Shown here: in pieces, positions 3,498 to 53,136 of the stretch
Layout of the letters: each line of letters starts with the position of its first letter
Position numbering within the stretch: position 1 is the stretch's first letter
Source: Saccostrea cucullata
Lineage: Eukaryota
DNA: 64,000 nucleotides
Direction: 5' to 3'
NCBI RefSeq assembly: GCF_032062105.1
Contig: NW_026935164.1
Location: 558,001-622,000 of the forward strand
Program-made: the position numbers and the translations under genes
The notes under the pieces: generated by a model
Told to the model about the DNA's origin: nothing
Seen by the model: the letters and a program-made list of their open reading frames with translations, nothing else
The model's database searches: none

Positions 3498-8790
<5,293 letters not shown>

Positions 8791-47996: not shown

Positions 47997-48288
47997 GATG
48001 ATCTGACGTTCACGTTGACTCCTGTTTTTCACCAATTTTCACCGGAAATTCTCGGAGTCTATGTTAATTTAAAACCAACCATGACAACTCTCCGGATTCC
48101 GTAAGGTTACAACATAAATAGTCCATTTGTAGCCTGGTACACGAGTATGTTTTTAGGGCACGTAAACGAAGTTTCGGGGTACATAGTTTTTGTTGTTTCC
48201 GTCCGTCTGTCTGCATGTCTCTCTCTTTGTTTGTCTGCAAAAACTCTTTTACCTTCCCATAACTTTTGATTTAGTGGAGCTACAGTAT

Positions 48289-51200
48289 CACGGCGGGGAA
48301 TCTACGTCATCGTACGGGATTAGGACACACAAAAATGGAGGACAAATGCTCCGCTTCGATGTAAGAAATTGATATTTTTGCACTTATAAAGAATGGATAT
48401 TAAATCAGTATCCTGCCTAAAGTATGCCAAAGAACGTCAACTACAATATTTATTGTACGTTTGTTTGTGATAGAATCTTATTGCTCCAAACACTTCGACA
48501 CAGTTTGAAAACAAGTGAGAAAAACCCGGGATGTTGGCCACACTTTTTTAAAATTCGACCTATTATTGGCATATCCAGATGTACTAAACATTTTATTCTT
48601 CCGCGTGTACACTAGAACTAATATTTTTAAAAAATTCAGATTTGTTTAATAATTTATTATGCTTTAATTATCCAAGAAAAATGTATAAATCATTTTGTTT
48701 TCAGAAATGATGTAGGTCACACCAACACTAAAACGGATATGGGACACACAATAAGTTACTTTCAAATTGAAATATCGAGCATTCATATCTTAATGTTTCC
48801 ATTTAAATGACTGCTGTTAGATAGTATATAAACAATAACCTGTAAAACTCATCTTTGTAATACTCATCCACATACTTGATTCCCTTGGTTTGCTTGTATA
48901 CAAACAAATATTATAAGTTGAAAATGCTGGTCTATTCCTCAACAAAAGCTTCCAACATGAATTTTTTAAATTTAATTTCATGTAGAAATTTACCGGTGTT
49001 TACTTGTGCAGATCTATACTTCAGAGAGAGGTGGACCGAAGTCCGGGGATTGTGTTTATTTCATGATATTTCTATTTTAAGTTACACGACATCCACCCCC
49101 CACCCCCCATAAAAAAACACACACGCATACACATACACACTCACGAAATAAGTTCTTTTTAGGTTGCTTGTCAAAATAGTTTGGAGTCAGAAAATTCTTT
49201 CAAGTGTGCCCCCCCCCCCCCCACCTTCCATCCCGAAAAAGTTCCTTAATCTGCATATTGGTATTAATAATAAAATCTTCGGCACTAGCATGTCTTTTAA
49301 TATGGGAAAGAGATCAAGAACTTTTCTTATGCTCAAATATTTTGCAACAACTGACCCTCCATGTGAATATAAGAATTTTTTTCCCTACACATGCTACAAT
49401 GGTCTAAAAATAGATCGGGAAATTCCAAATTGAAACAAATAGTTTCGGAAAGCTATTTTATTTGCTCCTAACTTACACTCAGGTGAACATAAAATTAGTA
49501 ATCGAATGTATGAAAGTGGTTGCCAGTGATGGGGAGGGCCAAAACAAAAACTGAAGTTCAAAATTGTCTTTTCGTTGTTGCCAATCAAAGGTTTTTAGCT
49601 GTCATTTTTCTCTGATAATGCCCCCCCCCTCCAAAACTTATCCTATAAAAGAGCTTGACATTATTTCTTTTTTGGGTATAGCTACTAAAGTACTTTTTAC
49701 AAAAAAATCCCAATTTAAACTGCTACAGTATTATTTATTTAACCCTGCTCCTATCACTGCTTTTGGCTAATATTCCAGCAAATGTAAATAAGATGGCATG
49801 ATACGTAATATTTAATCACTTATTCATACATGTATAATAAAACAATAATTGTTGTTTTTTTTTCAATCAATACGATGGTTTAGCCACCTTCCAAGTACAA
49901 TATTCAACTTTATCTTTTTTCTCAAATATGGAGTCGGTGATAAACTATTAGAATTTTGACACAAGTTTGTCAGCTGTTGCAAATATTTGAGCATAAGAAA
50001 AATTCCTTAATCTCCGCTTCCTATCAGCTGACATACTAGAGTCTTGCCGACAAAGATCTAATAAATACAAACACTGAATATTCGAATACAGAAACTTTTC
50101 GAGGGGGGGGGGGGGTTCCACACAAACTAAAAAAAAGTTCTGACTCCAAAATATTTTTACAAGCAAAGAAATTAAACAATCAACCTAAAAAAAGCTGTTT
50201 CTTGTGTGTTCAATAGGATCTGGGTCGTGTTACTCAACACAGAAATATCGTAGAGTACGTAAAATATACGTAGATTCCGGACTTCAACCCTCCTTTTAGA
50301 TCCGCACATGTATATACTAGTATCTTTCAATATGATATTTAATAAAAGTCAAAATTTGAAATTCATTTTGGCAGCTTTTGTTGAGGATCAGGCAGGCCAT
50401 TTCAACTTATAATATTTGAATTTTTGTATGGATACAAGCAAACCAAGGGAAAATCAAATACATGTGTTTGTTATTTGTTATTTGTTAATGTATTTGGATG
50501 AGTATTACAAATATGTGTTGTACAAGATACAAGATATTTTATTTACCAATCAAGGGCCTCGAGGGGCATTTCAACATACATAAATGTACAATTTAAACAT
50601 TCTTTTTTTTTAAATATAATTTTTTTAAACAGTTATATAAATGACCAAGTTACATAATAATATTGATAATATTGTTCTCAGTGTCAATGATCATACATAA
50701 TACAAGTATCCAGAAGAATGTCAATGATCACAAAATAATATAAAAATGTGATGCTATACATGTATAAATTTAAATGGCTTAGCATGCATAAACAAGATGA
50801 CAGAATCTATGTATTTATACATTGGTTCTTTTACCATTTTCAGAAATAAATTTTCCAAGAAAGCATAAAATTTCTTTATTATCATTATTCAGTATCCATA
50901 TAAGTTTTTCAGCAGGTGTCAAAGAAGAGAAGTTTGGGTTGATTTTTGATATTGTTTCCATTAATTGCAACCTTTCATTGCTGTATTTTGGACAAATGAG
51001 CAAAAAATGTTGTTCATCTTCAACTTCCTGTATATTACATTGAGAACACTTCTTAGATTCAGGGGGAAGTCCTGCATATCTTCCCCTTTCAATATTTAAT
51101 TGATGTGCAGAAATGCGAAGTTTAGTTATATTTTTCCTCTGATCATAGTTATTGACAATGTGGAGATAGCGTTCTCTTCCAAAATTGGTTCTGAAGATGG

Positions 51201-52065
51201 AATAAGTTCTTAGTTTACCATCATTTTGCTGTCTATTTTCTCTATACCATTGGTTTATAAAATATTATCTTATAATACATGATGACTTCTTTTTTAAATG
51301 AACAAGTACAATATTTTGGTAAGTCAATATTTTTGAAAGCAGTTAAATGACCCAAAATTGTCTCAATGGATGCAAACCATGATGGTTTATTTTCTAAAAA
51401 GAGGCTTTTTGAGACGGAGTATGCTTCTTTGAGTAGGACAAAAGATGGATGTAATGTTTCTAGTCGAAACCAGTAACTAAGCATAGCTTTGATAACTGAA
51501 TGATACAAGGAAGAGTCATTGTTCATATACTACCAAACAGCAGTCATCTAAATGGAAACATTAAGATATGAATGCTCGATATTTCAATTTGAAAGTAACT
51601 TATTGTGTGTCCCATATCCGTTTTAGTGTTGGTGTGACCAACATCATTTCTGAAAACAAAATGATTTATACATTTTTCTTGGATAATTAAAGCATAATAA
51701 ATTATTAAACAAATCTGAATTTTTTTTAAATATTAGTTCTAGTGTACACGCGGAAGAATAAAATGTTTAGTACATCTGGACATGCGAATAATAGGTCGAA
51801 TTTTAAAAAAGTGTGGCCAACATCCCGGGTTTTTCTCACTTGTTTTCAAACTGTGTCGAAGTGTTTGGAGCAATAAGATTCTATCACAAACAAACGTACA
51901 ATAAATATTGTAGTTGACGTTCTTTGGCATACTTTAGGCAGGATACTGATTTAATATCCATTCTTTATAAGTGCAAAAATATCAATTTCTTACATCGAAG
52001 CGGAACATTTGTCCTCCATTTTTGTGTGTCCTAATCCCGTACGATGACGTAGATTCCCCGCCGTG
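48289..52065. mobile_element. Fold-back non-autonomous DNA transposon with CAC/GTG termini and 5-bp TSD (Transib/RAG-like)
   Basis: ~520-540-bp near-identical TIRs starting cacggcggggaatc; TSD agtat at 48284-48288 and 52066-52070; diverged inner arms ~48830-49360 and ~49960-50520. Confidence 0.85.
50525..51517 (-). mobile_element. 5'-truncated non-LTR retrotransposon (CR1/L2-group-like ORF2 C-terminus and 3'UTR)
   Basis: GKLRTYSIF...TKLRISAHQLNIERGRY...CSQC...VEDEQHFLLICPKY with a frameshift; tail aataaaatatcttgtatcttg. Confidence 0.8.
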
Positions 52066-53136
52066 AGTATGACTTTCTGTAATTCTTGTGAGAAAAACTT
52101 TCATTGGATACCAAGTACTTTGACCCTTTGATATTGACCTTGGAGTTTGACCCACTTTTAAAAAGCAAACTTTGACCACCACTTTAAAGGGTTATATGAA
52201 TTTAATCCTTGTGACAATACCTTTCTTTGGGTACCACCAAATGACTCTTTGCCCTTGGAGTTTGACCTACTTTTCAAAATCGGTAACCTTGGCCATAAAT
52301 TTCGAAGGGTTACGGCAAGACTTTTCATTAAATACCAATTACCTTGACCTTCCAGATTTCTGTCTTATGATAAAACTTTAACCCTGGTCTACTTTCATAT
52401 TTCACAATTGTTTTTCCAGTGAGAATACCCTACTTTGGAAACCAATATATTAAATTCGCATATAAGAAAAGTATAATCTCCGCAATGTTGCCATACGGGG
52501 GCATCAGTGTTTCACAAACGCATCTTGTAATAAACTATATCACCACAGAATGTTATTATAATCACAAACTCGAAATTATGACAAACAAAACAAGAGCTCT
52601 ATGAGCCCCATCGTTTACCTTAGCACTGTGGTTATCAGGCGCGGATCCAGATGTTTTCCAATTTCCCGGGGAGGGGGGGGGGATTCCACCTAAGCCCTCC
52701 AAAGTCCAACCCGGAAATTTCTTAAAAAGCAAAAATGAAATATCCCGTAAACTCCTTTCCCACTGAATCGAATAAATGACTTTTCATACCAAACTCACTA
52801 CAGCTCCATGTTTTCGAGGAGGGGTTTAGCGTTTTCCATGTTTTCTAGGGGGTCCAAGGTCACTTTCCAGGGGGAGTGGGGGTTCCGGACCCCATGGCTA
52901 GGAAAAAAAGCACAAATTAGTTCAACATATTTAGAAAATCTTTAATGTCACACAAGTTGTCAAAATAGTTCACAAAATATACCTGGATTTCTGATAACAG
53001 AACAAGCATCAGACCGATTACATCACGATGACTGAACAAAAGATGGAGGAGATCATGCAATCATGGATGCATGGACGTACAAAAGTGCAGACATAAACAG
53101 TAATCACATACTCATACGTGCCAAAATACAAAGGAC

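Follow-up and report, generated by a model that had tools for sequence, protein, structure and literature searches.

The window analysed here is a 64,000-nucleotide (nt) stretch of the Saccostrea cucullata genome (contig NW_026935164.1; source assembly G000, 1.17 Gb), and coordinates are positions within it unless another locus is named. At 48289-52065 it holds a 3.8-kb transposon with CAC...GTG ends and a 5-base-pair (bp) target-site duplication. CAC termini together with 5-bp duplications are a widely used shortcut for calling Transib or RAG-like transposons, and hence for work that traces V(D)J recombination to its beginnings, and an earlier note on this DNA had placed the element in that group. 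Our analysis leads elsewhere: the element is likely a non-autonomous, long-armed, fold-back-shaped member of a lineage related to the P element, moved in trans. This P-related lineage has apparently not been described before. Profile matches and a structural model indicate that the transposase of its coding relatives is of the P-element type, with a YqaJ domain inside its DDE RNase H core.

Structure of the window element

Read directly, the element runs from CACGGCG to CGCCGTG, and its tips read CACGGCGGGG... from 48289 and ...CCCCGCCGTG up to 52065. It is flanked by a direct target-site duplication AGTAT (48284-48288 on the left, 52066-52070 on the right). The left junction reads ...GGAGCTAC AGTAT, followed by the element start CACGGCGGGGAATC...; the right junction reads ...GATTCCCCGCCGTG, followed by AGTAT GACTTTC.... 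The outer inverted arms (48288-48839 against 51515-52066) are 98% complementary over 552 nt, and the terminal inverted repeats were annotated as an inverted pair at 48289-48839 (plus strand) and 51515-52065 (minus strand). No transposase remnant was found in the window element. The description of a non-autonomous transposon with CAC...GTG ends, an AGTAT duplication and near-identical arms, as given in the earlier note, was confirmed, and the view that it must be moved in trans is supported.

The terminal 24 nt (CACGGCGGGGAATCTACGTCATCG; 48289-48312, plus strand) contain a TACGTCAT box at 48303-48310 and, judging from the sequence, are probably the end at which the element is cleaved and recognised by its transposase. 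With up to three mismatches, this end matched the genome 114 times (55 forward and 59 reverse), against 0 matches for the reversed control, a number well above chance.

A subterminal motif recurs along both arms. Copy 1 (GGACACACAA; 48323-48332, plus strand) overlaps the nonamer claimed in the earlier note; it is also conserved at either end of L045, a coding element described below. Copy 2 (GGCCACACTT; 48536-48545) and copy 3 (GGACACACAA; 48742-48751, also in repeat family D2) lie further inward on the plus strand, and the mirrored motifs of the right arm are at 51603-51612, 51809-51818 and 52022-52031. The pattern GGVCACACWW, which was derived from the same data, matched the window eight times against an expectation of 0.95; seven of the eight matches fell within the element, with three per arm at offsets of about 35, 248 and 454 nt, the two arms not being independent samples.

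Copies and target-site duplications in the genome

The 114 end matches correspond to about 57 family members, a few of them present only as assembly duplicates of others. Elsewhere in the genome, at least 40 arms matched the left arm of the window element at 93-98% identity. The commonest form is about 3.3 kb long with ends CACGGCGGAG, and the window copy is a member of the CACGGCGGGG sublineage. In the canonical copy L057, arms of about 970 nt at 95% identity enclose a centre of about 1.35 kb; from this copy, the original arm length is estimated at about 970 nt. The unusually long arms noted earlier were thus confirmed, at 552 nt in the window and about 970 nt originally.

The earlier note had proposed a tabulation of duplication lengths across copies. 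Where the flanks were read, a perfect 5-bp duplication was found in 34 of 36 paired copies; the exceptions were a copy on C100 without any duplication and a copy on C767 with 4 bp. The pentamers at 31 distinct loci comprised 30 different sequences, and their A+T content was 84.5%, compared with 65.5% in the window. The 5-bp duplication is firmly a property of the family.

These data bear on the CACTA/Mirage/Chapaev (CMC) group and other known CAC-ended superfamilies, to which CAC termini and repeated subterminal motifs might also point. Duplications in CACTA/Mirage/Chapaev elements are 2-4 bp, whereas those found here are exactly 5 bp in all but two paired copies. In addition, the protein associated with these ends is P-type by fold, and no CMC-type transposase was found between them. 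Membership in such a superfamily is extremely improbable.

Several insertions were represented twice in the assembly. The contig pairs C502/C22027 and C14116/C14425 and the loci L063/L064 share both insertion and flanks and were taken as duplicate haplotype contigs; two of the pairs are in reverse orientation, and the copies at L063 and L064 measure 2,991 and 3,322 bp. Copy counts are therefore slightly inflated.

A coding element with the same ends

Long copies were inspected for coding capacity. The 9-kb copy on C767 encloses a nested retroelement instead of a transposase of its own. This retroelement (L043:2162-6353, G000:C767) was called as Ty3/gypsy-type by eye, from the translations of gag, protease, reverse transcriptase and integrase-like open reading frames (ORFs). 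Two 7.5-kb copies contained no ORF of at least 150 amino acids (aa). The sole long copy coding for anything relevant was L045 (G000:C18823:51200-58700).

L045 holds a 6,682-bp element flanked by the duplication ACTAT. Its inverted ends (52 nt, 98%) are 88-90% identical to the first 50-56 nt of the window element, and over about 560 nt its right arm shares about 76% identity with each arm of the window element, including the left arm of the window aligned with the right end of L045. Beyond the first 56 nt or so, the window arms resemble the right arm of L045 only. An ORF of 874 aa in this element contains a YqaJ domain (E 7e-6) and weakly matches TNP-like RNase H; a 196-aa C2H2 zinc-finger ORF lies on the opposite strand. 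It is the only coding element with the window's ends found in this genome. The 874-aa ORF is truncated, and its homology to full-length relatives ends at about residue 960 of 1,515. The earlier note had suggested looking for copies with the same ends that enclose a Transib or RAG1-like ORF. A coding copy with these ends was recovered, but the enzyme is P-type and no Transib or RAG1-like ORF was found.

Because the only coding relative with these ends is broken, the family may now be immobile or may rely on a related enzyme. A stronger form of this view is that the whole YqaJ-containing P-type lineage is long dead, that the likeness of the arms within a copy reflects gene conversion, and that the copies are fossils without a partner. 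Arms of the same copy are alike at a median of about 98% and so differ by about 2%, whereas arms of different copies average 92% identity, a difference of about 8%; the truncation of L045 and the nested retroelements carried by several copies agree with this. Certain copy pairs are more than 99% identical, which speaks for later activity, although assembly duplicates were also seen. Long extinction is a real possibility, if the less probable one. It concerns the age of the family and not its identity, and it is compatible with assignment to a P-related lineage.

Relatives in other bivalve assemblies

Intact relatives were found in other assemblies. P0007, a protein of 1,421 aa that is 45% identical to the L045 ORF, is encoded in a 14,353-bp element with ends CAGGGTGACAAACGTACGTCATAG. 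The arms of this element measure about 520 nt and are 92% identical, and its opposite strand carries a C2H2 ORF. Five copies of this element are about 99.9% identical, and their duplications, all perfect, are all different (TTCAT, CAATT, AGTTA, TAGCT and TTCAG). Since five nearly identical copies each have a clean duplication, the P0007 element looks recently active on sequence grounds. At L078 (ENA ERZ25073814, ctg9135), one 14.35-kb element has inserted into a second copy; its flanks share a 5-bp overlap, which makes this a self-nested insertion with a 5-bp duplication.

The second relative, P0001 (1,515 aa), is encoded in a 13.9-kb element (L079 8350-22271) with the duplication TTTTT. One end reads CAAGGGTGACAACCTACGTCATAG and the opposite end CAGGGGTAGCAACCTACGTCATAG, and the C2H2 ORF is 43% identical to that of L045. 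The TACGTCAT box occupies positions 15-22 from the tip in all three families (window/L045, P0007 and P0001), while the third base of the ends varies among them as C, G or A. The 5-bp duplication was found in the three families and in at least three assemblies. Two genes, an end motif and a 5-bp stagger thus travel together, and the ORF therefore belongs to these elements and did not arrive as a nested guest.

The transposase family is large. In this genome it numbers 178 candidates, the longest open frames reaching 1,500 aa. Among the closest to the L045 protein are those at C13952:11471-13711, C2267:2811-5075 and C11428:253343-255572, together with open frames of 1,400-1,500 aa on C7784, C17762, C5193, C4611 and C22021. 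Public data contain 2,354 cluster representatives at E<=0.001. Named matches came from Mytilus, Mya, Ruditapes and Pinctada. One family member of 1,391 aa (P0004) was deposited under a bacterial metagenome-assembled genome (Candidatus Thiodiazotropha sp.) on a 4,957-bp contig, which is probably DNA of the host bivalve mis-binned into the genome of its symbiont.

The transposase protein

The Pfam profile TNP-like_RNaseH_N was matched by P0001 and P0002 (25 bits against a cut-off of 24.6). An alignment of 33 sequences revealed the near-invariant motifs DGKK...GDVDL.G.E, FDGQW, D..HLLT..R and E..FFS. In the YqaJ part, SPDG...VEIKCP, the D, E and K residues show little or no variation.

The AlphaFold2 model of P0007 residues 290-1400 had a mean predicted local distance difference test score (pLDDT) of 82.8 and a predicted template modelling score (pTM) of 0.71. 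It was compared with 48,161 PDB representatives, for which the stated background is about Z 7-8. The top match was the Drosophila P element transposase (6p5a_A; Z 26.8, root-mean-square deviation 2.4 A over 303 residues). The alignment spans model residues 12-1111 and residues 170-550 of the 6p5a chain, and the match therefore flanks the exonuclease insert on both sides. Lambda-exonuclease-type nucleases matched model residues of about 220-440 at Z 12-16. RAG1 structures scored at background (6dbi, Z 8.8; 6cij, 8.4; 4wwx, 8.2), as did the amphioxus RAG-like protein BbRAGL (6b40, Z 8.7) and HzTransib (6pqn, Z 8.2). Foldseek returned lambda exonuclease (E 2e-5) and 6p5a (E 4e-3), and no RAG or Transib chain was listed. 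In sequence searches of the PDB, the exonuclease domain alone was matched; the link to P came from Pfam and the structural model.

Relation to Transib and RAG-like elements

According to the earlier note, the window element would be a non-autonomous Transib or RAG-like element, moved by a RAG1-like transposase encoded elsewhere, with or without a RAG2-like protein (RAG2L). The CAC...GTG ends and the strictly 5-bp duplications agree with this, and this genome does hold an apparently complete RAG-like transposon with RAG1L, RAG2L and a 5-bp duplication. Non-autonomous RAG-like elements are also known from a pearl oyster, and the end consensus of protostome RAG-like elements is CACTWMCAAACKTYKBB (Martin et al., 2020; PMC7204232). 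However, the window ends (CACGGCG...) share only CAC with this consensus and with the genome's own RAG-like ends, CACTATCAAACTTCC. Nor is CAC a conserved feature of the lineage, since CAG or CAA stands at the tips of the sister families. The coding element with the same ends and the two intact relatives with related ends encode a P-type enzyme (Z 26.8 against 8.2-8.8). We consider a Transib or RAG origin very improbable. The earlier note had named a partner with a non-Transib transposase as evidence against its own assignment; as far as the data allow, such a partner is what was found.

The proposed layout of a recombination signal sequence (RSS) did not hold up either. RSS spacing follows the 12/23 rule, whereas the spacer is 33/33 nt here: 33 nt separate the initial 7 bases from the nonamer-like ACAAAAATG (48329-48337), and the right end shows the mirror image. 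Matches at seven of nine nonamer positions numbered 379 in the window, against 383 expected, and the match, which the earlier note had allowed might be chance, carries no weight.

A whole-genome search with the Pfam RAG1 profile recovered one RAG1L/RAG2L locus and three decayed copies, all unrelated to the window family. A direct link to RAG was rejected: near the RAG1-like loci fetched, no match to the window end was found, even with up to 6 mismatches. The RAG1L/RAG2L locus is an apparently complete RAG-like transposon (L039 1766-9294, G000:C20275) with ATATA on both sides; its ends, CACTATCAAACTTCC..., begin with CACTATCAAAC and fit the protostome consensus. Its RAG1L (Pfam RAG1, E 6e-59) has a RING finger and faces a RAG2L with kelch and PHD domains. 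The RAG1L is read as an 882-aa ORF and an overlapping 132-aa ORF, with a frameshift or an intron at about 6366-6444, and the RAG2L is split into two ORFs. The decayed RAG1-like copies (G000:C6888:15610-16813, C13579:24581-25784 and C16554:4157-5294; L033-L038) have the same numbers of stop codons in one matched segment (6 TGA, 5 TAG and 9 TAA) and are either copies of already dead sequence or assembly duplicates.

The likeness between the present lineage and Transib/ProtoRAG is confined to the 5-bp duplication, the CAC...GTG ends of this one family and, broadly, an RNase H-type DDE enzyme. The enzyme itself is not RAG1- or Transib-like, there is no RAG2-like partner, and the ends fit only at CAC. 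If our assignment is correct, CAC with a 5-bp duplication, regarded as a signature, has evolved independently in a transposase family that is unrelated. Within one genome it marks both a true RAG-like transposon and a P-type lineage of different ancestry, and annotation by this signature only would therefore miscount the mollusc relatives of RAG.

Assignment to a P-related lineage and its limits

By enzyme, as modelled, the lineage belongs with the P superfamily. The protein of the coding relatives shares with the Drosophila P element and THAP9 the P fold, the TNP-like_RNaseH_N match and a D..H motif followed by LL(T/K)..R. Cut-and-paste transposition, inverted ends and non-autonomous deletion derivatives are likewise common to both. 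The lineage differs from P elements in its CA(C/G/A)GG... ends with the TACGTCAT box, in the YqaJ exonuclease inside the RNase H core and in its conserved, separate C2H2 gene.

Several points weigh against this assignment. The target-site duplication is 5 bp, whereas that of classical P elements is 7-8 bp. No Pfam THAP match was found in five proteins (P0001, P0002, P0005, P0007 and P0012), the structural model covering residues 290-1400 of P0007. About 550 residues are missing from the C-terminus of the L045 protein, among them the D(2)H motif and the presumed catalytic E. With an arm identity of about 76%, L045 appears to be a cousin of the true master and not the master itself, and this assembly contains no intact transposase gene between these exact ends. 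The closest other family proteins in the genome are just 43-47% identical to the L045 protein; these were compared as proteins, while ends were compared for L045 and the two relatives from other assemblies. The support consists of sequence and a structural model, and the P-type assignment of the mover is a prediction.

ISL2EU elements of the PHIS superfamily offer another comparison, since they too link a YqaJ-type nuclease to a DDE transposon. Their transposase is reportedly paired with a YqaJ nuclease. ISL2EU elements encode this nuclease in a gene of its own, use a Harbinger-like transposase and make 2-bp duplications, whereas the present lineage has the nuclease built into a P-type core and makes 5-bp duplications.

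Galileo and Foldback-like elements of Drosophila belong to the P superfamily and have very long inverted ends (PMC3688188). They resemble the present family in having arms of 0.5-1 kb with several copies of a short motif that is likely bound by the transposase, a role that is predicted here, and in non-coding copies that are almost all arm. They differ in duplication length, end sequences and transposase architecture.

A literature search found no description of a YqaJ domain within a P-type core (Repbase and Dfam lay outside the comparison). Defined by YqaJ in the DDE core, an obligatory C2H2 partner, CA(N)GG...TACGTCAT ends and a 5-bp stagger, the lineage may be undescribed and may rank as a superfamily, a proposal that we make tentatively and do not quite favour over its opposite.

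Proposed mechanism of transposition

The window element would retain only the sequences required in cis, namely the 24-nt end with the TACGTCAT box and three GG(A/C)CACAC motifs per arm. Its mover would most likely be a P-element-type transposase of about 1,400 aa, made elsewhere, whose core is split by YqaJ and which would travel with a separately encoded C2H2 zinc-finger protein. The DDE core is predicted to cut the ends and join them to the target with a 5-bp stagger. The subterminal motifs may be bound by the transposase, the zinc-finger protein or both, and the TACGTCAT box is likewise a putative binding site. The YqaJ exonuclease could trim or resect the ends or aid repair of the donor site. 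The long arms may have formed when one end of an autonomous ancestor was duplicated in inverted orientation. If the lineage is the undescribed one defined above, the fused exonuclease may define a new way of processing transposon ends. An exonuclease fused into a DDE core merits mechanistic study and might lend itself to tool development.

Inner arms and the nested repeat

Inside the outer arms, the left arm continues in diverged form at 48836-49342 (plus strand), with 76-96% complementarity to 49981-50529, and the diverged inner part of the right arm lies at 49981-50451 (minus strand). Between them is a central non-coding loop (49343-49980, no strand assigned), in which no ORF had a family match.

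The right arm is broken by an independent nested repeat of 1,063 nt (50452-51514, minus strand), inserted at about arm position 551-592. This repeat is missing from the 3.3-kb copies, is carried by at least 15 family copies and also occurs standalone elsewhere, with 226 candidate copies genome-wide. In other copies, its 94-aa ORF is part of longer open frames, the largest being 1,184 aa, and a Pfam search of the 1-kb repeat gave no match. From these long open frames elsewhere, its one line of support, the repeat is probably the 5'-truncated tail of a non-long-terminal-repeat (non-LTR) retrotransposon. Copies carrying the repeat are found at separate loci and have differing duplications (AGGCA in L048, for instance), and this sublineage therefore transposed after gaining it. 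The repeat landed in the right arm of a single sublineage, whose spread came afterwards.

Insertion site

Both flanks of the insertion are abundant repeats (48147-48283 and 52074-52530, with 1,065 and 5,310 candidates). The target of the insertion was therefore itself a repeat, located just upstream of STOML2. No alternative haplotig of the locus was found in the assembly. One paralogue of the host repeat, 76% identical, runs uninterrupted across the insertion site; its divergence is too great for it to count as a clean empty site. STOML2 is on the minus strand, with its nearest recognisable exon (...NTIILFVPQQEAWVVERFGKF...) at about 46.8 kb. A plausible candidate ATG, located from the sequence, lies at about 47996, 288 nt from the element, and would account for the ~290 bp given in the earlier note. 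Insertion so close to the 5' end of STOML2 could affect its regulation. The right flank contains tandem units of about 115 nt (52134 and 52249).

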